Source: Heteronotia binoei (taxonomy: Eukaryota). From it: a stretch of DNA of 64,000 nucleotides. How positions within the stretch are numbered: the stretch's first letter is position 1; each line of letters begins with the position of its first letter. The stretch spans positions 91,884,001 through 91,948,000 of the forward strand of contig NC_083228.1 of NCBI RefSeq assembly GCF_032191835.1. Direction: 5' to 3'. The notes under the pieces are model-generated. The model had not been told where the DNA came from and did no database searches. It saw nothing but the letters and a program-made list of their open reading frames with translations. Shown here piece by piece: positions 10,341 through 64,000 of the stretch. The position numbers were made by a program, and so were the translations under genes.

Positions 10341-10519
10341 CAGCCTGTTTAGCGGCCCTAGCGAAACCGAAAACACCCTCAGATTCCAAAAATAACTCTA
10401 TAAAAACATGAAAGTGACCCACCCCACACAGCCCACACACCAACCCCCACACCAACCAGAGGTAATTTTAAAAAACCAAAACGTAACAGAAAGAAACTTA
10501 ACTTTTAACCCACCCACCC

Positions 10520-11040
10520 CAAAACCAGAACCAGGAAAAGGGACAACAGGACAGGATGCAAAACCAACAACAACAGATCCAAATAGATCACTGAGAAAAG
10601 GCCAAGAAACTCAACTGTTAAAAAATGACCTTTTAAACAATAAAAAAACCTCAGGCCAAATCAGTCAACAACACCCCTTCCCCCCCAAAAAACACCAGAA
10701 CCAGGAAAAGGAACAACAGGACAGGATGCAAAACCAACAACAACAGATCCAAACAAATCACTGAGAAAAGGCCAAGAAACTCAACTGCTAAAAAAGTGAC
10801 CTTTTCAACAATAAAAAACCTCAGGCCAAATCAGTCAACAACACCCCCCCTCCCAAAACCAAAACCAGGAAAAGGGACAACAGGATAGGATGCAAAACCA
10901 ACAACAACAGATCCAAATCACTGAGAAAAGGCCAACAAACTCAACTGTTAAAAAAGTGACCTTTTTAATGAAAATTAGGCCAAACAGCCCCCCCCCCCCA
11001 AGAACCAGAACCAGAAGAGAAAAGGAACAACAGCAGCACA
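10520..11040. repeat. Tandem array of about 3 copies of a 164-170 bp unit inside the hAT element
   Basis: The anchor (C/T)AGGATGCAAAACCAACAA recurs at 10552, 10722 and 10886, with a partial fourth unit near 11000. Confidence 0.9.
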
Positions 11041-21366: not shown

Positions 21367-21586
21367 GGGGAGGGACGGTGGCTCAGTGGTAAAGCATCTG
21401 CTTGGGAAGCAGAAGGTCCCAGGTTCAATCACTGGCATCTCCAAAAAAGGGTCCAGGCAAATAGGTGTGAAAAACCTCAGTTTGAGACCCTGGAGAGCCG
21501 CTGCCAGTCTGAGAAGACAATACTGACTTTGATGGACCAAGGGTCTGATTCAGTATAAGGCAGCTTCATATGTTCATATGTTCATA
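21367..21586 (+). mobile_element. tRNA-derived SINE with (ATATGTTC)n tail
   Basis: A box GGTGGCTCAGTGG and B box GGTTCAATC. A second copy lies at 59764-59975. Confidence 0.85.
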
Positions 21587-22742
21587 TCACTTCTGGTTTC
21601 ATGGAAGTGACATTGTGTGTTGATGCAACAGCAAATTGCCCCCATCCTGTTAAGTGCCAGCGGGGAATGGAGATCCACACCAGAATGTTTCCTTACATTT
21701 TTAAGTCAGTTTAAATCAGAGACCCTTCTATAGCAGGAGACCTGGCCCCCCCAGGTGGATCCAGATTAAACTGGCATTCGCAGCAATTCCCAATTCTCTC
21801 TTCAGATCGTCCCTCATGCTGTTCCTGGGGATCCCCTATACTCCAGGAGTAGCATTCTGGAGATCAATGGGCTGCAGTGGAAGGCAGAAATTTCCATTCT
21901 GCCATTTGAAAATTTAGTCTGGATCCAACTCAAATTCTGGTGCATGCATATATGGAAAATAGTTTGGATGGTAGAATGGACTAAATAGTGGAGCAGGACT
22001 TTATAACTGTATATACAGTTAACTAAATAGTGGAACTGGACTATATAGTTGTATATAACTGTGTATATATTTACTATATAACTATACTAAATAGTTTACT
22101 GCAGCTTTTCACCCTGACAGAGTAAAAAATTAAACTCTCAGTTATGGATAACAATTTAATTAAACTCTCAGTTATGGATAACAGTTTGTTTGACAAACAC
22201 TGTAAATTAAAGTCAAATCTAAATAAATCAAAGTCAATTATAATCACCTTCTTAAAGAAAATTTTATTGGCACAAACATCCACATTACAGATGTATACAA
22301 TAGCCTCGAAAAATGTACTGCCACTTTCAAAAGCCACTCTTCACATAAAGTACAATAATATCAATTTTTTAAAAACATTGCCACTAGTTTTCACTTCAAA
22401 AATATTGAATGAAATCCTTTGCATGCAGAATTTCACTATAGAATTTTTTTTTTTGCTGACCTTCTTGAGCAAAATTATTGGTCTGGCAGTTTTTCAGTGG
22501 CTTCGTTAAGACACAATGGCTGGAATGTTTTGTAGAAGCATAACAATCATCATAGTTTCTCCTGCATAAAACTGTACAAAATGAGAGGTGCCTTTTTTGT
22601 GTGAAGATGGTTTAGAAAAAGACAGTACCAAATCGATGACAAACACTGGCTATTAATATTGGGTACAATCCAATGCATGTTCAAGTTCCATTGATTTCAC
22701 TAGGATTTTAAAGTGCTCAGCTTGTGACAAACATTGGCCACT

Positions 22743-24584: not shown

Positions 24585-27500
24585 GACTATTGCAATTGCC
24601 AGTGCAATCACAGGTAGAGTTACATCCTTCTGTTGAAGCTGAGAGACTCAGAAGGTGTAACTCTGCTTAGAGCAGCATCATAACTCTTATTCTCTCTGAA
24701 AGATTGCTGTGTGCTCTGAATGAAAGGTATCAACTACTGACCTCATGCATCTTTTTTTTTTAAAGAAATAGTAGAAGTGTACCATATACATCTTTTCATA
24801 GTACTGCAATAACTGGACTCTACATTCTTTGTCTGAATTTATCTGCCTGTTCTGAACAGACTCTCGAAATGAAGCCAGTTGAGTGAGGAAGGGCAAGTGC
24901 TGTAAGCAACCACTGTGCCAGAAGTAATCACATGCTGACTTAATTCTTGCCCAAAGAACTGTTAAGATTATTCATGGGCTTGGGGCGGGGTGATGTTTTA
25001 TAAAAAGTGAGGGTATAATATGTCCCACCCATGTTGCCAAGTTATGTCTTCCCTTGAATCTGCTTCAATTTCACCAGTGTATATCATTCCTGTCAGAGAC
25101 AATTGTGAAATGAAACCTTACTGTTCCAAGATAGAATACCATACATACTAGATGCTGGAGACAAACAACATGGAAGGGGGTTCGCTTCATACCCTGCCTG
25201 CAGATTTCCTGAAGACATGTGGCTAGCTACTGGCACTAGCCTGGAAGGAGACATGAGTATCAAACAAGTACAAGGCAGAGGTGGGGGATGGAGTCTTAAG
25301 CCGCATAGTCCAAACCCTAACTTTTCCTTCCATTAATTTACTCCCAAAATTATTTTACATTTTGGACTCTCTCCCATTTCAATTCCCCTTCAGTTTATTT
25401 AGCTCAAAGCACAAATTTCCCTTTAAAAACAAACAGAAGATGCATGTTGGCCTCTCACCTATGTTCACTCAGAGCTTTCCTTTAATGTAGCCCAGTCCTA
25501 ACAGGAGCCCAAGCCTTTATACCCTGACCTCAGTTTGAAGGAATTGAGACTTGGAGAACAAACAACAACAAGTGTAGACTGTCTACAGTAGATGTATGAC
25601 AGTTGTGTTTGTTGTTTGCTGACCAATCAAGCAGCCAGCCACTTGACATTCCACTGAAGCCATTCTGCCTCCCCTACTCAACCTGTCCAGTCTTCTCTGC
25701 CTAACATTTGCACAGTTGCCAGCAGTTTTCCATGGTGGGAGCAGCCAAAGAGACTGTCTTTGGTTTTAAAGCCCTGGAGTCATTAAGAACTCCAAATTGG
25801 CCGGGGGGGGGGGAATAGAAAGATGGTGGTTGATCGAATCTCCTTCCCCTTACAGTGGTAGTCCCATATTAAACTACAGTAAAGATGAGCCACTTTGAAT
25901 CCATTAGTATGAACTCTAGTATATATTTTGATAACTGACATAACCACTCCTTACAGAATCTCTTGTTTGAGCCAACTGAACACTCCAAAGGCTTTTATTA
26001 TCTTGCAAAGTCAGTATTCCTTAAGGAGATAGTTCAAAGCTCAAAGTTCTTCATTTTTCACTAAATGGGTATTAGGATTGCACTGAAAAGGTTGACTCAT
26101 GAAATAAACATTGTTTCTGTGTTTACGTGTATACCTCTCACCTTCTCTAGCATGCAGAGCTTGATTGAACACCTCTGTGTGGAATCCTAGCTTGTGTGGT
26201 GTTGTAAATAAATCTCTGTGTGCCAAGGAGCCTGCATCCAGGTAACATGATGAATTGGAGCTTCACCAAGCCAAGAATTTTTGCATCAAGCTTTGAGCAC
26301 CTAGGGAGGCAGGAGGAGCAAGGGCTGGCACAAGCACAGCAAGAAATCACTGTATGCCTAGCTTGGGAGTTTCACTGCATCTTGTCATTATCTGAATGTG
26401 GTTTCAGGGTGGATCCAAAGCAACATGAGCAGAAGAGAAATAATGGCTAGTGCACATCCTCATCTGCAAGAGCTTGGTTTGAAAGTCTATGGATAAATGA
26501 TAAGGAAGCCAATAAAAAAGTTCTAATTTCTTTCTAGCAAAGAAAGGGGTTAAAGATGAATTCTCTCATGCTCTCCTCTTTGTCCCCCCCCTTTATTAAT
26601 AGTAATCTTTCCCCCCCTTATTCTTCATCCTTAGCATTTATATATTCTCCCTTTAAAGAAATAAAATAGAAAATTGACATAAGGTTGTTTTTGGAATGAG
26701 ATTGGAGAAGAGAGAGGAAGATTACATATTTATACCAGGTCTGGGAAATTGACACTTGAGCTTGCTAGGTGATAACTGCAAATCATATTCATGTTTTATG
26801 CAGCATCCTGTTCCCTTTCCGGAAGGCTGTGCAGATCTAATTGCCTCAGAGATCTCCCTGCTTTATTTTACCAGCAACATATGCATAGCTGTTAATAATG
26901 GCTCTTCTCTCAGCCAAGCCACCTTCCAGGTACTACACTCCACACTTACTATTATCTGGAGAACTGGTACATGTTAAAATTCATGACAGAATGAGGTTAC
27001 CAAATGACTCACAGCCACATAACTAGGTGTTTACACTCACAAAGCTGCATGTAATTGGGCTGTCACAGTTCTGCCTTTTCATTCACAGATGTAGCTTTTA
27101 AAATGTCATCTCAATGGGAAGCTGTAACCACCTTGAGTGACTTGGGTCCCTTTTGTATGTGCATGCTGGTGATTATTATCCTGGTCACAAAAGGAAAATA
27201 AAGGCCCTGAGATCAGCAGCACTGAGGTGCTGTAATGAATGGCAGGAGGGAAATTTACTGAAGAAAACCTCTCAATGGAAAAGGAAGAGGGGAAAAATAA
27301 GGAAAAGACATCTGGAGGGAAGTGAAAGCTGGTGGAAGAGCCTGGGAGCATCCTGAACTGGGTTTTATGCTGCGTCCAATAGTAATATCTGAAGATCTTG
27401 TTCTGTTAAAATACAAGCATCTTGACTTCTTATCTTTAAATTTGGGGGGTCTCAGGGTTGAGTTGTTGAATTGGTAACATAATCACGGTGAGACAACTGG

Positions 27501-32006: not shown

Positions 32007-32542
32007 GATGTAACTGTTTTGTAGGTTGTGGATATAAAAGTGGACTCGCTTACAGAACGTCTGATAGTCCTGCAAGTCCTGTGACCTTCCTGTGCTTAGT
32101 GGAAACTCAGCTTTCTTGAAGCTCACCCTCTAATTGATACAGGTAGATTTTGTGACCTAAGTACAGGATTCTACAGTTGAAGATTATGGCCTCTTAATTG
32201 TCTGCTGAAGCCTATCTGATGTTCCCTTGAAACACGAGTTCTATACAACTTAGAAAATTTCAAGATGGTTGTTTTTCAAAAATGACAGTTTTTGAAGGTC
32301 AGCATGGGCACATTTTAAGACACAGTGATAGACTAACATGTGGAACTAGTTGGCAGTATTCATCTGGCCCAGTTTCTTATAGAAACAACATAATACCAAA
32401 ATACACTACATGGAATTCTTACATACGGTTGCAGGCTCACAGCCCTCAAGATATGAGGAATTAAAAAGCAAGTTTCATTGGGAAAGATTATCAGAAAACA
32501 GGTCACTTGAACAAAGACACAAAACCTTTTGTCCTCAGTGGT

Positions 32543-32559
32543 TCAGGTGCAGAAATAAA
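32543..32559 (-). CDS. VAMP exon 5 coding part (IYFCT-stop), followed by 3' UTR
   Basis: Strong polypyrimidine acceptor ctgtcttttccttctttcttccag, then TT TAT TTC TGC ACC TGA. Matches the VAMP2 VYFST / VAMP1 IYFFT endings. First AATAAA hexamers noted downstream are near 31387 and 31320. Confidence 0.9.
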
Positions 32560-35500
32560 CTGGAAGAAAGAAGGAAAAGACAGTTGACAGTCTATATTGC
32601 AGCCAGAGGAATCAGCAGGTTTCCAAATACATCCACACCTTGGTTACATTGCATCAACAAGTACTTGAGCAAAAGACTCAAGAAGACTCTTGGGAGTCTG
32701 AAGAGTCATTTACACCAAGTCCTGTAGGATAACTAAATTGTCTCCACCAGAATCCTACCAGAGTTTCCTTTTAAAATTTCTCAGGCAAAGCAACATTTTT
32801 GCTAGGCAATTTTGCTCCCATCACCAAACAGGCCTTAGAATTAAAAAAATCTTACAAATATTTAACATGTCTGTAAAACCCATTTTTTTTTTTTTTATCT
32901 AACTCTGTAGTACCAAAACCTCAATATTTTACAGTCTACTAGAAAAGTGGGGGGAAGTGTTCCCTCTAAGCTGTGCACATGAGTGGCCACTCATTCACCC
33001 AGGAAGCCCATCTCAGCAGCAATCTGAAGCTGTGCGGTTCTCCCCTATTACAAAACAACTTCTCCCACACCTTCCCTTGGCTCCACCCAAACCTCTTCCA
33101 TTTCAACCATGCAGGGCTCTTTTTCTAGCAGGAGCTCGTCTGCATATTAGGCCACGCCCCCCGATGTAGCCAATCCTCCAAGAGCTTAGAGGGCTCTTAG
33201 TATAGGGCCTACTGTGAACTCCAGGAGGATTGGCTACATCAGTGGGGTGTGGCCTAATATGCAAAGGAGCTCCTACTAGAAAAAGAGCCATGCGAGTCCT
33301 TTGCCAATGGAAGCCTCTCCTATCAGCCTTGATAGTTAAATGTGAACCTTCAAGTTCAGAGGCAGTACATCTCAGATACAAAAGACAAATCACGGGTTCA
33401 TGGGTTTAGGTAAGTTTTCATCTTACTGTTCTGAATGTAAAAGACATTTTGTTGTTTACTTTTGGAAATAGAAAGAATGTTGGACTCCTTGGACACTTGC
33501 CTCAAAACATGGAGAATAAGACAGAGTCTGAGCCTAAAATAGTAAATCCTGAAAATAACTTCCCCTTCAATCGATTTATCCCAAAGCATCCAGTTGCTCC
33601 AAAAGTAATACCTCATCAATGAATTTACTTCAAGAAACGCATTTTCTAGCCAGATTTCCAGTGCTTCCCAAAGTTTCACCATGTTCCCCTGCCCCATCAA
33701 GAAAACTTTTCCTAATATTTCTCAATTATCATTTGATAGCAACCAAACCACCTAAGACAGCTTTGTCTCCTCTTGAGTCATGAAGCTCTGTCACAGGTAT
33801 TGTTGTTGACTGTGTTCTCCTGGGTCTTCACATCCAGTAAAAAGAGGCAAGAGAACACAATTATTTTTTTTAAAAAAATTGACAGTTGCCAATCAGCAGC
33901 TAGACTGCCACCCTAGGCCAGATCCACACCTTCTCCACAAAGTGTGCCTCCCAAACACCAATGTCTGCTGGGGGCAAGCATGGAGCTTGTACACTATAAT
34001 CCCTATTGGCTCAAAGACTGTGAAGCATCAGAACACACACCTCAACCATTACTTAAAGCAAATAACAAAAAAAGAAAGAAATTATTTTAACAGGCCCACT
34101 AATAGAAAAGGCACTCAAGTCTCAAGTGATAGATGGCTCCCATAAACAAACTGTTATTGGTTTATCCAGTAATCATATACAATATATGTGCCTGTCAGTT
34201 CCCTATGTTCCTCTCAGTATTTTGGAATTGCCCAAATGGACTTTGCCATGGGCTCTGAAATACTTGTAGGAAGGACCCCAAGAACTTCACTGCGGCTGTC
34301 CTCAGGCTGTGGAACTGTCTTCTCTTTGTTTGGTTTCCTGAAGATCCTGACAATTAATTCTCTCCTTGATTTTTCAGCTTTTAAAATAGTTATTATTTTA
34401 TTGTTAGCTTTTGGCTAACTGGTTTTTTAGCTTTCATGTTTTATGTGTTGTAAGCAGGGCTTTTTTGTAGAAAAAACTCTGCAGGAACTTATTTGCATAT
34501 TAGGCTACACCCGCTGACATCACCATCATTTGATACAGGGCTTTTTGTAGAAAAAGCCCAGTGGGAGCTCATTTGCATATTAGGCCACGCTCCCTGATGC
34601 CAAGACAGCTGGAACTGCGTTCCTGTGTGTTCCTGCTAAAAAAAAAAAAGCCCTGGTTGTGAGCCAATATGGTCAAGCTTGGCACAGAACAGCAGAATAT
34701 AAATGACCTAAATAAACAATACAGGTACATAAATGCATGAGAAACTTTAGTGTGAGCTGTCCATTTATGCAAGAATAGCCATTACATTTCTGAGATCATG
34801 AGTGCTCTTATTGAAAGCACTGTGCATACTAAAATGGCCACATGTAAGCAGATGGTCAAGATCCAGCCGGGACTAGATCCAGACTCATCAGTGCAAAACA
34901 CTGTCCAAAACCTTTCAAGTTCTGCCATAGGTTTATGAAGTTATAACTATATGCCACCCAGACACAGCTTTCATATGGTGGTCTATCTAGGGTATTTTAG
35001 AGTGACTATAGCATCCTTGGCTGACATATCCCTGTTGAATTGCTGATAGTGTTGACTTCTTGAACCAAGCCCTGATTATCAATAATATGCCACCTTCAAT
35101 GTACAAGGTGCGCTTCATCAATTAAATCTGTACCCAGTGCCATAGTTGCACTATGTCAGCCTCCTGTCTTACTGTACATGTTACATACATATTTTCAGAT
35201 CCTAAGATCAACATTTGCTTGCTTGTATGTGAATAGTTCTTGTTGTTATGGTGAAAACACAACATACCTTGTACTTCTTGATTAGATACCACATCAGCTG
35301 TTTTGCCCGGGACATCAGAAAGGCTTTATTCACGAGCTGATTTAATGAATGACTGTGCTGTCAGAAGGACTTTTGTTGTTGATTTCAACAAGACCAAGAT
35401 TAGACCCTGGTCATTGAGAAAGCATTTTGCTCAGTCGTGAAAAGGAGCCTCTTTACTATTCAGAAAATCTAGCCATTAAACCCCATCCCCCAAAACCTGT

Positions 35501-38500
35501 TGTTCCTCAACCCTGAAGATGGCATTATTTATTCATGTCTCCCTACAGAAGACCAAAACAAAAACTCAGTGGCATCTTAAAGTCTAACAACTAAATTCTC
35601 TTAATCTTTAAAGTGCTATTTTAAGGTGCCACTGGACTTTCATTTTATTTTGCTACAACAGGCTAACACAGCTACCCCTTTGCAATCCCTAGAAGCAACT
35701 TAGAAAAAAAGGATTTACAATACTGGACTCTTGGTAAACATTTGGCCATTATTTCATTCAGCTCACTGAAAGTCCTGAAATTAAGGAAAGACTGAGTTAA
35801 AATGAAAATGCATGTTACTCACTTATAATTATGATAAAAATGACCGCACATACTACACCCAGGATGATCATCATCTGAAAAGAGAATTGCGAAAAAAATG
35901 GAGAAGTGTTACTCTTGTCTGGGTGGTTTGAGAGGCAGCTGACATTCTTCCAAGTGTAGACATGTAAGTTTTCCAGAACACACAAACAAAGTATACTTGA
36001 AAGGCACGTGGGTACCTTCCACCATTCACTACTGTGCCACAGTCATGATCTGTTCATTCTCAGACCTGGACTTCCTTTTGGTATGCATTTATTTATCATT
36101 AAGGATATTTTGTAATTTTTCAAAGGCAGTCAGGGCCTGGATGAGTTGTAGCTGCTACACCAGAAGTCTTTCTACTGATTACATTTTTATCCAATTTTTT
36201 AGTTCAAGGAACTCAAGATGGCTTACATAGCATCCACCTCATAACAAACCTGCAAGGTAAGTTAGACGGAGAGATAGTAAATGGCCCAAGGCCACAAAAA
36301 TGAGCAGCAGCAGCTTGAATCCAAGTCCCAACAATCCCATCCTCTTAATAATTACACCTCAACCTCAGTGGAAATCAAGTAATCCTCAACCTTGGGGTCC
36401 TATTGCTGTTGGAGCTGAAACCTGAAGTGTAGCAGGCAGAATATATTGACTAAGGAAAGAGCAAGAAGTCTTGGTTTCTAGTATTTATATAGGGTTGCCA
36501 AGTCCAATTTAAGAAATATCTGGGGACTTTGGGGGTGGAGCCAGGAGACATTAGGGGTGGAGCCAAGATCAAGGCTGTGACAAGCATAATTGAACTCCAA
36601 AGGGAGTTCTGGCCATCACATTTAAAGGGACAGCATACCTTTTTAAATGCCTTCCTTCCATAAGAAATAATGAAGGATAGGGGCACCTTCTTTTGGGGCT
36701 CATAGAATTGGACCCCCTGGTCCAATCTTTTTGAAACTTTGGGGGGGGCATTTTGGGGAGAGGCACTAGATGCTATACTGAAAATGTGGTGCCTCTACCC
36801 CCAAAAAACAGCCCCCCCAGAGCCCTAGATACCCGTGGATCAATTCTCCATGATTTTCTATGGGAATAAATCTCCATAGGAAATAACAGAGTTCCCAGCA
36901 GACATTTCCCTCCCCTCTCCCCGCTTTCTGACGACCCTGAAGCGGGGGGGGGGGGGGGGCTCCAACCCGGGGGATCCCCTGCCCCCACCTGGGGATTGGC
37001 AACCCTATATTTATACCAGCCTAGGCCAGTCCAGTGGCTTTATATAGCCTTCCAATGGCAGGAACGAATTTTGCATAAAGCTCTTCCTTGCCTGAAAAGG
37101 ACTCTGAAACTACACCCAGTCAATAGTAGATCACTAGGTTATATTCCAGCCTTGGGCTGTGCAATTTCCTGACAGTGACCTACATACGTCAAGTTAGAAT
37201 TTTCACTATAGCTGACTCATACACAGCAATTTTTGCACTTGCATGCCAAGTTGGGTTAAGAAACAGGAGCTGATTTTCTCTCACAATAGCAAGTCTTACC
37301 TTACAGTTTTTCCACCAGTATTTCCTCTTCAGCTTGGCTGCACTAGTTTCAAATTGTGAGGCACCAGCTTGCAATGCATCTGCCCGATTATCAAGCTCTG
37401 AAAGTTTCTGGTCTCTTTCTAGTACTTTATCCACATTGACCCGCATTATGTCCACCACCTGGAATGAATGTGCCAAAAAATTAGAGGCTCTGTTTGTAAA
37501 ACAATGAAAAGTACAAGGATTATCATTAAGACATGAAACAAATGCATAAATGGGAAAAATGACTGCACAGATAATTTTTGTGTAAGAAGCCAGAGTTTCA
37601 CATTTATTTGTGCTGAACTCAATTTTCTTACCTACCAATAAGAGAAAGTACCTATACAAGAGAGCAGAGGATTGAGTGTTTACATGGTAGGATGCATTCC
37701 TAAGCACACTTAATGGCTAATAACTCTTGATGGAACTTCATTCTGAGAAAAAGATGCAAAAACATTGGTTCACGATGCCTTAAGTAACAGAACACAAACG
37801 TTCTGACCATGTATTAAAAACATTGTGAAAGTTCAGTGGAGCATCCAGAATTTCAAACTTTTACATCTGTTTTATTTTGTTTTTTCTTTTAATATCCCCT
37901 CTTCTGTCACTTGACATCATTTCTGATTATCTTTTGCTACATGATCCAAGTCAATAAGAGATCATGTAATCACAGACCATGTAGCCAGTTTGGTTTGGCT
38001 ACATGATGACCTCAGTGAGGACAAATGACCTCACTGAGACAGAAAGGCATATGTTCCCATTACTGAGGTAATCAGGCTGTATTGTCCTTCCTTTCTTAAA
38101 GAGAATAAAATTTTGCCAGGCTAGCCTGATCTCATCAGATCTTGGAAACGAAGCAGAGTCAGTCCTGGCTAGTATTTGGATGGGAGACTACTCTGGAATA
38201 CCAGGGTCATGACACAGAAACAGACAACGGCAAACCACCTCTGAATGTTCTTTGCCTTGGAAAACTTTTGGGGTTGCCATAAGTCAGCTGTGACAGCAAA
38301 AAACATGTTTTTTCAACTACTGGTATGATAATTGAGATAATCACACTGAAAGACTCAGATAAACACTGAAGTTATCATATTTGATTCAGCAGTCTGCGTT
38401 TTTTCCAACTACAGGTCAAATGTTCTTAGACAATGAAATACTTAACATATGTCTTTCTGTGAAGGAAAGGTCAGAGGTTTGGCATACCAGCTTCGGCCTG

Positions 38501-41500
38501 AATTCATCTATAGACTTAGAAGGCAGTCTTAAGACTTTGTGTATTTTGCCCTTATGCAAGAGTGCTGATGCTCTTAGAATGTTACCTTTCACCTCCTTCC
38601 TGGAATACACATTTGTGGTAGAGCTAAGGTAAACATCGGTCTCTGTGTTCTGCTTGCTTTTAGTAAATGATTGTGTAAAGAAAAGTGTATAAAAATAAAC
38701 GACCACTGTCAGACAGACAGACAGACCGGTACGTAGAGCCTCAACCCTGTGTTGTGATTCCTTCCTGTAATTCCTGTAATTTCCTCTCTCCTTAAGAACC
38801 AGTTATTTCTCATTATTGTAATAAACTGACTGACATGAGGACTTCTGAAGGACTGCCTTGTTTCCAGTTATTTGAAATACAACAGTGTAATGGATGAATA
38901 TTTATAGACAAAATCATGTTTTTGCAGCTGAGTTTGAAATAAGAATTCTTGGTCATGGCATTAGACTCTTGTAAAAGGCACCAGGCTATATGGTTCCCAT
39001 GACACCTTCCTGTCTAAGCCATAGTTAGGAGGGCTCCAATGAATATTCACATATGAGAGCCTTAATACAAAAGTAGCACTTTTGGGAGACACTGAACATT
39101 TCCTCCCAAAAAAAAAGTTTTTCAGGGAAGCAAAAATGAAATCACCAAAACTACCTTCCTCCTTTGGTTCAGCTCCATTTATTATACTGTAATGACAACA
39201 ATAAGTCCTGCGGCACATTAACAATTTTATTGTTGCACATTTTTTTTTAATTGGTGTCACAGTCTTGTTGCTTTTGTTACAATAGGCTAACAAAATGGCT
39301 AAGCCTCTGGACTTTATTCACAGTAGTGGGCTTTTATGGTGTTTGGTGCCACCTAAAGGGTATGTTTAGTATGGCATTGCATTATAACAGTCTTTCTAGA
39401 TGGATCTTGTTTCCTCTGATACATATTTACTGCACAGGAACCAGACGCACTCCTGCAAAAACACTGTTTCTGTTGCTAGCATATTACATTTCCCCAGCAT
39501 TTGTTGTATGACTGAGAGATTTGTAAATGTTGCTTCATTTTGACCTGTGCCACCCTGTGAAGCAGCAGCAGAAAGGAAGTGCTAGGTCACCACCTGGTGT
39601 TGCCAGCTAATCATACAATAAAAAACCAAAAACAAGCCCAGCCTTTTTTCCTGGTCAGCTTCTTGCCAAACATGAAAGAAAAAAAACTCATTTCCCCTTC
39701 TCCATCAATTCCCTCACCTTCATAAATTTATTTTACTAACACAATATAAACAGATATATGGGGAAGCAGCAGGTTGTATGTTCTGCTCTCCTGTGACTTT
39801 CAGGCTGTCCTCAACCTCCTTTGAGCTCTATACTGAGAGTGATGGGGGTTTGGTAACACTCTGGTCCTTCTCCTCTCCCCAGCATCTTTCCTCAGCCTAG
39901 GGGAGAGTTAATGGTATCGCTTCATTGGCTGCTTTCCACCTTCTTTTAAGGCAGCCCTGCAGGCTGCACATGCTCTGTAGCGTCTCCTGTCCCCCAAATG
40001 ACATCCTGGTATGTGGGTACAACTTCTCCATCACCTGTCATTGAGTATCTTTGTCCTGCCTCCCTCCATTCTGGACTGACTGATAGACAGAGAGTGATCC
40101 CCATGATCCCTTGTAGCTCTTTCCTGTCACCTCATTTGCCACCCAGCTGAGAAGTGGGTGAGGTTTTACTGAACATGAGGTCAGGCATATTTGTGTAGCC
40201 TCCCCCCCCCCCACACACACCATGGGTCATGAGGGGCTGGGAAGCTGCATACTACCCCCTGCCTGCATCAGGACACAGTCCAGCCCAAATGCAGCAGGCC
40301 TGTGTCTCTCTGAGGATTGGGGCTACTCAGTGGTCATTTTGTAGAAAAATAGGTGGTGGAGCTCATCCAGGAATTGTTATGCAGCTGCACATACTATTCA
40401 ATGGACAAGGAGGTGGAACTCTCAGAAAGGTTCAGGTGCTGTGCTCCTGTGAGTTCCCACTGAATCTGAGTCCTGGGGCTACTCCCTGCCCTCCTCCAAG
40501 CTCTCTTCGAGCTGGAGTGTGGGACATCAATGGATCCAATTGTCTCACATGGTTCCCTCCTGCAACAGCAGCCAGTTAGGAAGGGTGCTGCATGGACCAC
40601 CCAGCAATATATATTTGTATTGTGCATGTATGCATTGCACGTGCATGTTCACTGGGCTGGAGGAGACCAGTGGAAACTGATTCTTGTGCACATGTGCAAA
40701 ATGTATAGTGGCTGTCACTCTCTCTTCCTTGCCTCTGAATGAAACCTGAAGTTGGCAAGGCAAACAGCTTCCTTGAACAACCGTATCATGTCTAAACCAA
40801 GTCTCATTTATGAAGAAAAAGACTGCAGATTTATACCCCACCCTTCTCTCTGAATCAGAGTCTCAGAGTGGCTTACAATCTCCTATATCTTCTTCCCCCA
40901 CAACAGACACCCTGTTAGGTAGGTGGGGCTGAGAGAGCTCTGCCAGAAGTTGCCTTTCAAGGACAACTCTTGTGAGAGCTATGACTGACCCAAGGCCATT
41001 CCAGCAGCTGCAAGTGGAAGAGTGGGGAATCACCCAGTTCTTCCAGATAAGAGTCCACACACTTAACCATCACACCAAACTGGCTCTCTTTACATTGTGT
41101 TGCAACCCATGCAAAGCAATGGCATATGCTCAGTATGCTCTCCAAAGAACCGTAGCTTTTGTGGATACTGTGCTGGCATACTGCCTAAGCACACATAGCC
41201 CCTTTGAATCTTTAGAAACCCACACAGGGAAACTCTTAGGTATACCTCTATCATGCTTAAATCTGGCCTCAGAGTATGGCAAGGAGGTGGTACAACAGCA
41301 GGAAGACAACACTGAAGAGGAGGAGAAGGAGAAAATGGGGGAGGAGTCATTGCTACATTCAGGGCTTTTTTGGTAGGAAAAACCCAGCAGGAACTCATTT
41401 GCTGGGTTTAGGCCATATTAGGCCATACCCCCTGACATCACTGGAAGTGACATCACCTGTTCAGTAGGTTACTTTCTACATATTGATACAGAAGAGTATA

Positions 41501-42770
41501 GTGCCATCAGCTGCCTGCATTTCATGGATGTGTGTTCTCACACATCCCAATGAGAGATCTTGTTTGCCCCCCCCAAAAAACACACACACACACACACCCA
41601 GAGAGAAAGAGCCATGTGCAGCAAAGTGGACAGTGGCAGGCCCAGCTTCTGGAAGATGGTACTCATGGGCGGCTCTGTGTATCTTGCTCTCTTCACAAGC
41701 CCATTGGAGGCTGGAGGTGGCAGAGAGGATGGAACGCATAGTCTGGGAGCATGTGGCTACCTAGTGTTTTCCCTCTGCTGGAGACCGTTTTTTGAGCCAG
41801 AGCCCTGTCCAAGCCAGCTGAAACTGGATTCCTGTGTGTTGCTGCTATAAAAAAAGCCCTGGCTACATTGGCTGTCTCACTTGCACCCATTTCTCTGAGT
41901 GATGGTGGTGGTGAGTGAGCGGCAATGAGGAGGAGGTTGGTGAAGCGAACAGAAGGCAGTGAACAGCAAAGATGCAGTGGGTGAACCTTGGGCTCGGGTT
42001 TTGCAAGTGGTGGTCCCACTGCTGCCTGTCTGGCAGGCTTTTTGGAGCAGGAACTCTTTTGCATATTAGGCCACACACCCCTGATGTAACCAGTCCACCA
42101 AGAGCTTACAGGGCTCTTATTTCATCGGGGTTTGTGGCCTAATATGCAAAGGAGTTCCTGCTACAAAAAAAGTCCTGCCGTTTGGTATGTTCTAAGATTA
42201 GTCAGGGAGTCTGTCCATTCTTTCCTCCCCCAGTGTACGCAAAAGAACTCTCTCTCTCTCTCATGGTTTCATATTTTTTGTGTTTGTATTACATATGTGA
42301 TTTTTCCAGAAAATTTTAAACTACTAGGGAAAATGTAGTTTTGTCCAGAAAAAATGCTTTTGGGAAAAACTGAAACAGGTACAAGAATTTTCTTTTTGAA
42401 CATAAATTTATTTTAATTGATTTAGGTCTTATGATTGAGGTGAGTTTCCCATAAACTTTTGCCTGTCACTTTTTGCACTGTGGGAGCTCAGTATAAAATG
42501 TTAGTGGTATTGCTTGATGGCAAGGGCATGCAATAGTGAAACACAGAGTACTCTGCTCAGGCGAGTACCCTACAAGTGGCATTTAACAGACTATTTAAAT
42601 AATAATCTTGTAATCCCCAAACATGGTCAAGTCTGTCAGAACTTACCTCATTCACTTGGGCTTGTGTCTGCTGAAGCCTTCGATTGCTAGTCACATTGGT
42701 CTGGAGAGGGGCTCCTCCGGCGCCAGGACCAGGGGCACCACTGCCACCCAGGGAAGGAGTTGGTGCTGAC
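32543..42770 (-). CDS. VAMP2: Vesicle-associated membrane protein (synaptobrevin, VAMP2-like; VAMP1/2/3 family), spliced CDS exons 2-5. Predicted (M)[116 protein letters not shown], 117 aa
   Basis: Four exons with GT-AG boundaries, in-frame joins and sizes (124, 159, 52, 17 nt coding) matching the conserved VAMP1/2 exon architecture. R-SNARE motif, WWKN juxtamembrane segment and C-terminal TM helix are present. Family assignment is certain; the symbol is only the closest label and orthology to mammalian VAMP2 is uncertain (see findings). Confidence 0.9.
33112..33292. mobile_element. Palindromic MITE related to the CAGGGCTTTT family
   Basis: Inverted arms of about 70 bp containing TGCATATTAGGCCAC...GATGTAGCCAATCCTCC. 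TSD not recognisable. Confidence 0.8.
34455..34655. mobile_element. hAT MITE, CAGGGCTTTT family
   Basis: TSD GTTGTAAG / GTTGTGAG. Internally duplicated ATTTGCATATTAGG module. Confidence 0.85.
35823..35874 (-). CDS. VAMP exon 4 (transmembrane helix [17 protein letters not shown])
   Basis: 52 nt. Acceptor ttctcttttcag and donor GTGAGT (35822-35817). Size and phase match VAMP exon 4. Confidence 0.95.
36490..37007. mobile_element. Non-autonomous hAT element (TAGGGTTGCC termini), apparently young
   Basis: Intact TIR TAGGGTTGCCAA / TTGGCAACCCTA and perfect TSD TATTTATA (36482-36489, 37008-37015). Older relatives lie near 15950, 48360, 51590, 60690 and 61300. Confidence 0.9.
37300..37458 (-). CDS. 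VAMP exon 3 (SNARE core [53 protein letters not shown])
   Basis: 159 nt, identical in size to the mammalian VAMP1/2/3 exon. AG at 37460-37459, GTAAG donor at 37299-37295. Embedded in ORF 37189-37707. Confidence 0.98.
38114..38300 (+). mobile_element. 5S rRNA-derived SINE with RTE/BovB-type tail (5S-Sauria-like)
   Basis: The 5' part parallels 5S rRNA (CCTGATCTCATCAGATCTTGGAA..AAGCAG...TAGTATTTGGATGGGAGAC). It continues into GGCAAACCACCTCTGAA, which resembles the Sauria-SINE/RTE tail. Too diverged and chimeric to be a 5S gene. Confidence 0.8.
40328..40475. mobile_element. hAT MITE
   Basis: Perfect TSD GGGCTACT (40320-40327, 40476-40483). Confidence 0.82.
40812..41088 (-). mobile_element. tRNA-derived SINE, same family as 18526-18803
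   Basis: High similarity over its whole length to the other copies in the window. Confidence 0.85.
41360..41861. mobile_element. Longer non-autonomous hAT element, CAGGGCTTTT family
   Basis: Perfect TSD GCTACATT (41352-41359, 41862-41869). TIR CAGGGCTTTTTT / AAAAAAGCCCTG. Confidence 0.85.
42034..42177. mobile_element. Palindromic MITE, same family as 33112-33292
   Basis: Inverted arms GCAGGAACTC(T)TTTGCATATTAGGCCAC. Degenerate TSD CTGTCTGG / CCGTTTGG. Confidence 0.8.
42647..42770 (-). CDS. VAMP exon 2 (Pro/Gly-rich N-terminus plus start of SNARE motif: SAPTPSLGG...[15 protein letters not shown])
   Basis: Acceptor AG at 42772-42771 and donor GTAAGT at 42646-42641. 124 nt beginning with the G of a split AT|G start codon, as in VAMP1/2/3. 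Not in the ORF track. Confidence 0.93.
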
Positions 42771-59763: not shown

Positions 59764-59975
59764 GGGGAGGGACAGTGGCTCAGTGGTAGAGCATCTGCTT
59801 GGTAAGCAGAAGGTCCCAGGTTCTATCCCCAGCATCTCCAACTAAAAGGGTCCAGGCAAATAGATGTGAAAAACCTCAGCTTGAGACCCTGGAGAGCCGC
59901 TGCCAGTCTGAGTAGACAATACTGACTTTGATGGACTGAGGGTCTGATTCAGTATAAGGCAGCTCCATATGTTCA
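59764..59975 (+). mobile_element. tRNA-derived SINE, same family as 21367-21586
   Basis: Near-identical sequence to 21367-21586. Confidence 0.85.
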
Positions 59976-61805: not shown

Positions 61806-64000
61806 CTCTTCTCTTTTGCCCCCATCTTTCTCAATCTACCCTCCTTCTCTGATAACCTACCTCACTTTCTTCATTTCCCTTCCCAACTGCTGCCTGCTTG
61901 ACATACCTTGCCTCACCCTATCTTTCCCTTCCCTCCTCAACTCCTACTTGCCAAGGCCATGACACTCCCCCACAACAAATTTCTAGTGTCTGTTGTATTT
62001 CTCTCCCCAAGGGGCCTTATTACTAGTATAGAATAAAATCAATTGTACCTGAATGCTCGGACTGATTTGGCTCATCTAGGCTCCAGGCAGAGGGCTCTCC
62101 CATCTCTGCTGCCTGAGAGACTTTCCCCTGAAGATACTGGACATTTAACATGGAACTTTCTGTGCATACTGAGCAATTGTCCATCCCAACAATAATAATT
62201 TTGCTATTCAAAAAATGGTATTAAAGAATCCACAAATACCACATCAATTCACCTAGAAGTGATACACAGTCACATAGTTCTAAACAGCTTTACTTTAAAT
62301 CTTATTTACAGGACACTTGTATACTCTGAAGCCAATTAAATTAGTGGCTATTTAACTATTTTTCAGAAAGCTCAGAAGCTGAGTTAATTGCAATGCCCCT
62401 TCCATAGGATCAGGTGAAAATAAAGAATGCATGGCACAAAAATAAATCTCCATGCTAATACTCTCAGAATGACCCTTATGCTTACAAGGGGCTTTGGGGG
62501 GGGGGGGTGGTCAATAACAACTTGCTTGGAAAAGCTCAGTATGGCAGCACTAGAATGCACATAGAGTAAGATAAATATAGCTGAATTGCTGAGTCTTGTT
62601 AGTACAGTTTATGTAACTGCAGCAGGAAACTGTTGCATTCATCACCAAAGAACAGCTCATACAAATAAAGGTATTTGACGTCATCCTGTCTACTTACATA
62701 CATACAACTAGGCAACAGCATCAATAGCAGGAGCTGCAGAGCAAGTTCATAAATGCTAGGGAAGAACAGAGACCACATTCAAACCAAGGAATGCCTAGTA
62801 AAGAAGATATATGCCCATAGGACTTGTTCAAAGGCCTAAACAAGAAGAAGAATTTTAACTTGGGCTACTGGACCTTTTGCCATTCAGATGACAATTTCAA
62901 TAAAGATACTAAAAGAATTTTTTTTAAATGGTGCAGCCACTGGGGTCACAACACAATTGGGCAAGAAACTTTGCTCAGACTCTGCAGAAACAAAACAGTT
63001 GTTCAGATTACGTTCTACACTGATAATTGCTTTGTCCTTTGATCTGAACAAGATGCAGGAGTAAACTGCACGAAATGTAGATGATTAGCAGTGCAATCCT
63101 AAACAGAGTTACATCCTTCTGAGCCTATTGACCAAAACAGGCTTTGTTTAGAAAGCCTTTATGTTTAAATAACTGGAAGCTACAACAGACTCTGCTGCAA
63201 GAACTTCTTTTTAACTGGTTCCTCAGTACTATGATCCTCTTTAAATTGCTACCTCTCTGAAGTTTGTCCCACTTGGGAAAAATATAGAGTACTTGTCTTC
63301 TTCAGTGGTTAGGCTGTGGAAATCTGAACTCTAGTTCCTGCCCTGCCATAAGAACCTAATTGGGTGTCTTTGTGCCAGTTACTACAATCAATCACCCTAA
63401 CCCACTTAACAGGATTGTTGTGAGAGTACAGTGGAGGAGGAAAGAGCCCACTAAACATAACTCCTTAGAGGAAGCATTGGATAATATGTAGGTAGAGAAG
63501 GCTGTAGGGCTTCCGTAAAAAAGAAGTAGAAACTTTAGAATATCTAACCATGGAGTTTCTTTATTTTATGCACTTTGTTCCATAGGTAAAATTTGCTTTT
63601 TCAGAATTGACCATAATGTCCATGGGCAACATCCTGAATTTCTAATGCTGTGTAATAACAAGGAAATATGGAGTATAAATAAATAAATAAAATAAAATTC
63701 ATTAAGGCTAAAACAATCAATGACATTTCAGGATCTCCTGAACTTCAAACAAATATTTGCTTTCAGGCTGTATACTGAAAAAAACTCTCTAATAAAATAA
63801 ATTGGGGGGAAGAATCCTAGATTGCAAAAAAATATGTGTAAGATCAGTTTGCTTGGTAAAGATTATGGTGAGAGATAGCTCAGCTACTGTCCCAAATACT
63901 GTACTCACTTGACTGTCAGCTACCTGTCAAGTAACTGCTTTGGATGATCTGTACCCTAAGTGGTGTGATATGGTAACACCATTCTCATGCGTGCCATCTT

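Follow-up and report, generated by a model that had tools for sequence, protein, structure and literature searches.

VAMP1, VAMP2 and VAMP3 are the closest described relatives of the gene considered here, a synaptobrevin gene of the gecko Heteronotia binoei, which we call VAMPx together with its counterparts in other animals, and which lies on the minus strand of a 64,000-nucleotide stretch of DNA (the window; RefSeq assembly GCF_032191835.1, contig NC_083228.1, positions 91,884,001 to 91,948,000). VAMP2 shares with VAMPx the Pfam family PF00957, a near-identical SNARE core, a long Pro-rich N-terminus, a transmembrane helix that starts with MMIILG..C, and a five-exon layout with a split start codon. 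However, VAMP2 has KNLK, ELDD and VYFST where VAMPx has KNCK, ELDN and IYFCT, and VAMPx also differs from it in a coding span of 33 kb and more and, in turtles and birds, in its location on another chromosome. VAMP1 is like VAMPx in its MSAP start, long N-terminus, KNCK and ..YF.T C-terminus, but unlike it in FESS, EEVVDI, an MMIM helix and a site beside MRPL51 and NCAPD2. The VAMP1A and VAMP1B forms differ by an alternative C-terminal ending, and VAMPx may likewise gain one (..ISE) by read-through of exon 4. VAMP3 has the QFETS and WWKNCK of VAMPx, but a short N-terminus, an MWAI-type helix and a position between CAMTA1 and PER3; its PIK3CD/PER3 region is paralogous to the PIK3CB region in which VAMPx is located in the frog Spea bombifrons. 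A different gene family, FOXL2/FOXL2L, lies in the same pair of paralogous segments, which has been attributed to the first two whole-genome duplications (PMC10606028); in the case of VAMPx, the copy missing from therians would be the one in the PIK3CB-type segment.

The present analysis indicates that VAMPx very probably forms a distinct, fourth orthology group. The gecko locus is probably a functional fourth brevin-type R-SNARE gene, most likely the fourth duplicate retained from the two early rounds of whole-genome duplication (2R), i.e. the fourth 2R ohnologue, and lost in therians. The gene is already present in databases, under "-like" names; full-text literature searches, whose coverage of the literature is incomplete, found no published description of a fourth synaptobrevin paralogue.

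The fourth synaptobrevin type and its distribution

A set of 241 proteins was assembled from a search with the full-length gecko protein (P0001), of which the best 120 of 3063 matches were taken, and from a length-restricted search with exon 3; human sequences were left out. Labels of the form P0001 denote protein rows and those of the form L001 denote loci fetched in this analysis, and coordinates are otherwise those of the window. The VAMP2 type was marked by KNLK and VYFST, the VAMP1 type by FESS, EEVVDI and an MMIM helix, and the VAMP3 type by a short N-terminus and an MWAI helix, while the fourth type, VAMPx, had ELDN instead of ELDD, KNCK, an MMIILG helix and the ending IYF[CS]T. ELDN occurred in 118 proteins of the set, every one of them of the fourth type, and in no VAMP1, VAMP2 or VAMP3.

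VAMPx was seen in squamates, turtles, crocodilians, tuatara, birds, frogs, echidna (P0051) and platypus (P0059). The frog proteins (P0158, P0160, P0161, P0163, P0240 and P0241) are 99-100 amino acids long, with a Pro/Gly-rich N-terminus of about 10 residues, a diverged membrane helix and a long branch in the tree. The same helix and KNCK also occur in one newt protein and in several proteins of sharks and chimaera, in which ELDD is nevertheless retained. The newt protein and a chimaera gene both have the helix MMIILGAICA and the N-terminal end TQPPNT; in pairwise scores, the newt protein was closest to turtle VAMPx and the chimaera protein, and the best matches of the chimaera protein outside the cartilaginous fishes were the newt protein and turtle VAMPx. 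The chimaera has three distinct synaptobrevin genes in the protein lists (P0064, P0065 and P0113), of which P0064, along with the shark genes, resembles VAMPx most. These similarities suggest that VAMPx is probably also present in newts and cartilaginous fishes. The best 120 of 3063 matches included no VAMPx from a ray-finned fish and none from a therian, though monotremes were present, so that the gene appears, from the sequences retrieved, to have been lost in placentals and marsupials. The original prediction had placed it outside mammals altogether, which agrees with the lack of therians among these matches and does not hold for platypus and echidna.

The labels of VAMPx records vary between VAMP2-like, VAMP1-like, VAMP3-like and plain VAMP2, as had been anticipated for sauropsid orthologues named after VAMP2 or VAMP3. 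Entries named VAMP2 that are VAMPx include those of chicken (UniProt A0A8V0ZWA0; P0058), zebra finch, penguin and platypus. Two different hoatzin proteins are both named VAMP3 (P0062 and P0223), and one sheep record in UniProt carries the name "Period circadian regulator 3" although its sequence is that of a VAMP3.

Two maximum-likelihood trees of 68 rows were built, from 92 core columns and from 114 full-length columns. The VAMP3 clade was supported at 100/100 in both trees, and the VAMP2 clade at 99/88 in the core tree and 90/91 in the full-length tree. The gecko protein fell outside the VAMP1, VAMP2 and VAMP3 clades in both, in a group of sauropsids and frogs supported at 94/77 with monotremes included (core) and at 92/77 without them (full length). 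The proposal that this synaptobrevin fits none of the three known paralogues is thus borne out by both trees.

Furthermore, carriers of VAMPx have true VAMP1, VAMP2 or VAMP3 genes at other loci, in keeping with the earlier view of a paralogue additional to these three. In hoatzin, VAMPx (P0062) lies on a 96-Mb contig and the true VAMP3 (P0223) is flanked by a CAMTA1-type gene and PER3 on a contig of 22 Mb, this VAMP3 having the short N-terminus and MWAI helix that the gecko protein does not have. One penguin assembly has VAMPx on OZ281876.1 and, on OZ281871.1, a VAMP1 that adjoins MRPL51 and NCAPD2, with FESS/MMIM against the FETS/MMII of the gecko protein. A KNLK-type VAMP2 exists besides VAMPx in Mauremys, Caretta, zebra finch and pigeon, and in Mauremys and pigeon the two genes are on different chromosomes; the neighbours of the pigeon VAMP2 were uninformative, with a single deaminase-domain match in very GC-rich DNA. 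Separate VAMP2 genes of the KNLK/VYFST type were found in Anolis (P0115), snakes (P0116), turtles (P0095, P0098, P0106 and P0121) and birds (P0101, P0104 and P0111), and in the platypus VAMPx (P0059) lies on another chromosome than VAMP3 (P0198).

Chromosomal setting of VAMPx

In Spea bombifrons (L009), a catalytic gene of the class I phosphoinositide 3-kinases lies on the strand of VAMPx and ends 8.8 kb upstream of it. Against solved structures one of its C-terminal exons scored 78.7 bits with p110-beta, 48.7 with delta and 38.8 with alpha, and we take its last exon to encode a p110-beta-type C-terminus; by these comparisons the gene is PIK3CB. Between PIK3CB and VAMPx, on the opposite strand, Spea has a small C17orf50-like gene (Pfam DUF4637, with a zinc-binding C-terminus), and a DUF4637 exon lies upstream of VAMPx in the same place and head-to-head orientation in Nanorana and six birds. 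Because this neighbour is common to frogs and birds, their VAMPx genes can be regarded as orthologues, and the gecko gene would be tied to the bird loci by its membership of the same clade and by conserved non-coding blocks. The full C17orf50-like gene is uncalled in the bird loci, where a 46-amino-acid upstream piece has been called in two. We know of no C17orf50-like counterpart beside PIK3CB in therians, and this gene may have been lost there together with VAMPx.

In humans, PIK3CB and FOXL2 lie at 3q22.3, and HES6 and PER2 at 2q37. The region of foxl2, with pik3cb, rbp2, nmnat3, clstn2 and hes6, and the region of foxl2l, with pik3cd, rbp7, nmnat1, clstn1 and hes4 together with per3, are paralogues from the early whole-genome duplications (PMC10606028). 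VAMP3 falls in the PIK3CD/PER3-type region, and VAMPx of Spea in the PIK3CB-type region. The home of VAMPx would thus be beside PIK3CB in the FOXL2/HES6 segment (human 3q22/2q37-type), as seen in the frog and as expected for the gecko, and this segment would be the 2R sister of the PIK3CD/PER3/VAMP3 segment. The suggestion that the gene belongs to the fourth, HES6-PER2 or 3q-type segment has therefore gained a physical anchor in Spea, while the 2R timing that went with it is not proven by the trees.

Origin of VAMPx

Several other explanations of the locus were weighed. That it is a decaying or non-functional copy, either a pseudogene or a retrocopy, is suggested by its repeat-rich, gene-poor surroundings, but is close to inconceivable in view of its four introns with consensus splice sites, its open frame, and its conservation. 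When gecko exons 3 and 4 are set against those of six birds, the proportion of synonymous differences (pS) is 0.56-0.63, with synonymous sites near saturation, against a proportion of nonsynonymous differences (pN) of 0.010, and the ratio of nonsynonymous to synonymous substitution rates (dN/dS) is 0.007-0.010; the exon 3 DNA is 85-87% identical between the gecko and bird loci, with one amino-acid change only. Because dN/dS is about 0.01 at near-saturated synonymous sites and promoter, untranslated region (UTR) and other blocks are common to gecko and birds, the locus is, as judged from these alignments, a maintained, functional gene under purifying selection and not a relic. An identity with VAMP3 or VAMP1, or with a tandem copy of VAMP1, could be read from WWKNCK, present in both, and from the VAMP1-like or VAMP3-like labels of some orthologues. 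Such an identity is nevertheless extremely improbable: in approximately unbiased (AU) tests, nesting of VAMPx in tetrapod VAMP3 gave p = 0.0001 and nesting in tetrapod VAMP1 gave p = 0.016, and true VAMP3 and VAMP1 genes, with their own helices, FESS in VAMP1, and their own neighbours, exist besides it. It is also very improbable that VAMPx is simply the gecko VAMP2 orthologue with lineage-specific substitutions, as database labels of VAMP2-like and VAMP2 and a best structure match to VAMP2 would have it, since lizards, snakes, turtles and birds have a separate KNLK/VYFST VAMP2, and the VAMP2 clade (99/88) excludes the gecko protein.

An origin of VAMPx as a later duplicate of VAMP2, in the tetrapod or sarcopterygian stem, that became fixed beside PIK3CB seems unlikely, though it has more to be said for it. 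Under such an origin the KNCK genes of sharks and chimaera would be something else, e.g. VAMP3, and the chimaera sequence does group weakly with VAMP3 (99/73 and 90/45). The core tree has the VAMPx group as sister to VAMP2 (98/85), the nesting of VAMPx in tetrapod VAMP2 gave p = 0.074 in the AU test and was not formally rejected, and the best 120 matches included no VAMPx of a ray-finned fish. However, the tree constrained in this way was worse by 27.9 log-likelihood units (delta lnL), and chance would have to account for the arrival of a late copy in the exact whole-genome-duplication paralogue of the VAMP3/PIK3CD region. Furthermore, turtle VAMPx and the chimaera gene are the closest matches of the newt member, which shares MMIILGAICA and TQPPNT with the chimaera gene, a search of the 10 kb around the chimaera gene gave no exon of CAMTA1 or PER3, and the AU test rejected neither a single clade of tetrapod VAMPx including the newt (p = 0.27) nor a single clade of all VAMPx including the sharks (p = 0.33). 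We thus favour the fourth 2R ohnologue because of the PIK3CB adjacency in the frog, the chain of orthology from frog through bird to gecko, and the unlikely chance landing of a late VAMP2 copy at that place. A 2R origin, as opposed to a later VAMP2 duplication, is most likely on the grounds of synteny and is not proven by the trees.

Several points weigh against the fourth-ohnologue origin. The backbone of the trees did not resolve, because the alignments have only 92-114 columns, and the monotreme, newt and shark rows shift between the two trees. A VAMP2 duplication confined to tetrapods is disfavoured and, at the p value given above, not formally rejected, and the placement of the shark and chimaera genes in VAMPx rests on similarity and on an AU test that did not reject it. 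The PIK3CB adjacency was seen directly in one species, Spea, only. PIK3CB was not found within 10-15.6 kb of VAMPx in three other species: the 10-kb flanks of the gecko gene contained no called gene and no PIK3CB or DUF4637 exon, Nanorana had the DUF4637 neighbour and no PIK3CB within 10 kb, and the penguin had the DUF4637 exon and no PIK3CB in the upstream sequence to 15.6 kb. The large-scale synteny of the gecko beyond its 10-kb flanks is thus taken over from the frog. In the chimaera, the 10-kb flanks were empty, with no CAMTA1, PER3, PIK3CB or DUF4637 exons. The absence of VAMPx from therians and ray-finned fishes is likewise read from the best 120 of 3063 matches and not from genome searches.

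Considering these results, we propose the following scenario for the fourth ohnologue, towards which the evidence tilts by a little. Jawed vertebrates may have begun with four synaptobrevins, the fourth of which, beside PIK3CB in the FOXL2/HES6-PER2 segment, would have been kept under extreme constraint from cartilaginous fishes to monotremes, with losses in the therians and the ray-finned fishes; the records named VAMP2 in chicken, zebra finch, penguin and platypus would then all represent this gene.

Gene structure and predicted role

Read exon by exon, the window contains four coding exons with consensus splice sites on the minus strand that give a 117-amino-acid synaptobrevin (Table 1), and exons 2-5 and the motifs MSAP, QFETS, WWKNCK, MMIILG and IYFCT reported in the original prediction were all present on direct reading. 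Exon 1 contributes only the "AT" of the start codon, which the first base of exon 2, a G, completes; exon 2 covers the N-terminus, rich in Pro, Gly and Ala, together with the first part of the SNARE motif, and exon 3 aligns to rat VAMP2 (PDB 2kog). The database record puts the gene, whose coding span is 33.4 kb, on CM063330.1 (150.6 Mb), and the locus fetched for it (L007) corresponds in reverse to positions 22543-64000 of the window (blastn). Exon 1 sits outside the window, 1.95 kb past its end, so that the 21 kb preceding exon 2 are intron 1 and not intergenic DNA. The coding region is accordingly longer than the 10 kb noted at first for exons 2-5, and the gene-poor surroundings described with it were correct in that no other cellular gene was found among the open reading frames (ORFs) of the window that were scanned, but mistaken as to the 21 kb upstream. 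The scan compared 54 other window ORFs of at least 90 amino acids with Pfam and gave no cellular family, the only matches being one hAT and one reverse-transcriptase fragment.

A search with the exon 2 ORF, in which 41 exon residues were scored, matched the 117-amino-acid P0001, "VAMP2-like [Heteronotia binoei]", at 100% identity. The full P0001 sequence is the same as the exon-wise reading, including the C-terminus from exon 5, and was used as the whole-protein query in place of a joined spliced model, the exons being queried separately. Without splicing at the exon 4 donor, the frame runs on to an alternative ..IIIISE ending, and SE or SK endings recur in database models of geckos, skinks, tegu, tuatara, turtles and birds (including P0002, P0007, P0012, P0013 and P0074). 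The ..ISE ending may mark a genuine second isoform or simply follow from the donor consensus.

Table 1. Positions of the VAMPx exons, conserved blocks, repeats and the C17orf50-like neighbour (window coordinates unless a locus is named)
Feature	Position	Strand	Details
Exon 1, coding end	65953-65954 (L007 10001-10002)		..AT/gtaagt; 1.95 kb past window end
Coding exon 2	42647-42770	-	124 nt; acceptor ..ctag/G, donor GAG/gtaagt
Coding exon 3	37300-37458	-	159 nt, 53 codons; SNARE core with Arg57, Asn66 (ELDN) and WWKNCK
Coding exon 4	35823-35874	-	52 nt; transmembrane anchor
Exon 4 read-through	ORF 35815-35985		stop at 35815-35817
Exon 5, coding part	32543-32559	-	finishes Ile codon, then YFCT and stop; ends ..TGC ACC TGA
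3'UTR block	32267-32469	-	just past stop codon; 75-79% identity between gecko and six birds (blastn)
Intron 1 conserved block	62616-62718	-	78-81% identity to six birds; holds full palindromic TGACGTCA site
Conserved non-coding block	26981-27160	.	5.4 kb downstream of stop codon; gecko-bird identity 70-73%
Conserved non-coding block	22242-22364	.	10 kb downstream of stop codon; gecko-bird identity 73-76%
C17orf50-like gene	L009 4907-5997; L011 4402-6546; L001-L006 ~2.0-2.3 kb; L012 12292-12498		two frogs and six birds
Rfam tRNA matches	21372-21443; 59769-59840		41.8 and 44.2 bits; heads of one short interspersed element (SINE) family
SINE copy	21367-21576		93% identity to copy at ~59764-59975
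A/C-rich tandem repeat	10508-10965		170-nt unit, 2.8 copies; within 8-12 kb block with raised GC and strong AT skew

The promoter and exon 1 region was also conserved between gecko and birds. The intron 1 block may act as an activity-regulated enhancer or as an alternative promoter. The gecko-bird blocks were undetected in the frog, chimaera or VAMP1, VAMP2 and VAMP3 loci. VAMPx genes are long through a huge intron 1, with coding spans that rise from 25 kb (chimaera) through 33 kb (gecko), 45-49 kb (birds) and 105-115 kb (sharks) to 220 kb (platypus), compared with 3.8 kb for bird VAMP3 and 2.6 kb for bird VAMP1.

Pfam Synaptobrevin (PF00957) covered residues 30-116 of P0001 with 119 bits against a cut-off of 26.4, and no second Pfam domain was found. 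The best match among solved structures was rat VAMP2 (2kog; 182.7 bits), with an alignment running through the SNARE motif and the transmembrane helix, in which the zero-layer Arg57 (..VLERDQK..) is aligned with the matching Arg of rat VAMP2. A single C-terminal anchor, hydrophobic residues 96-114, follows a basic and aromatic juxtamembrane segment and lies on the VAMP2 helix; there is no longin domain. In amniotes and frogs, VAMPx shows fixed differences from VAMP2, namely Asn66 within the acidic stretch that reads ELDD in VAMP2, Cys94 for Leu, and the C-terminal tail. By homology, VAMPx would be a tail-anchored, brevin-type vesicle R-SNARE with a variable Pro/Gly-rich N-terminus, because its SNARE core is near-identical to that of VAMP2, including Arg57, the WW juxtamembrane pair and the Gly/Cys-containing helix. 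It would zipper with syntaxin and SNAP-25-type Q-SNAREs and thereby drive the exocytic fusion of vesicles, either regulated or constitutive.

The textbook exocytic set of VAMP1, VAMP2 and VAMP3 would thus be the therian set, as an almost invariant fourth member appears to be present in most other tetrapods, among them chicken, zebra finch, frogs and lizards. This would change how SNARE redundancy, knock-outs and expression data are read in animals that have VAMPx, and would correct the orthology labels of one gene that is now named VAMP2, VAMP2-like, VAMP1-like or VAMP3-like. VAMPx would also provide a clean marker for the PIK3CB/FOXL2/HES6 versus PIK3CD/PER3 paralogon, and the loss of the gene would be dated between the monotreme split and the therian ancestor. 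If this is true, studies of non-mammalian "VAMP2" may have addressed the wrong paralogue.

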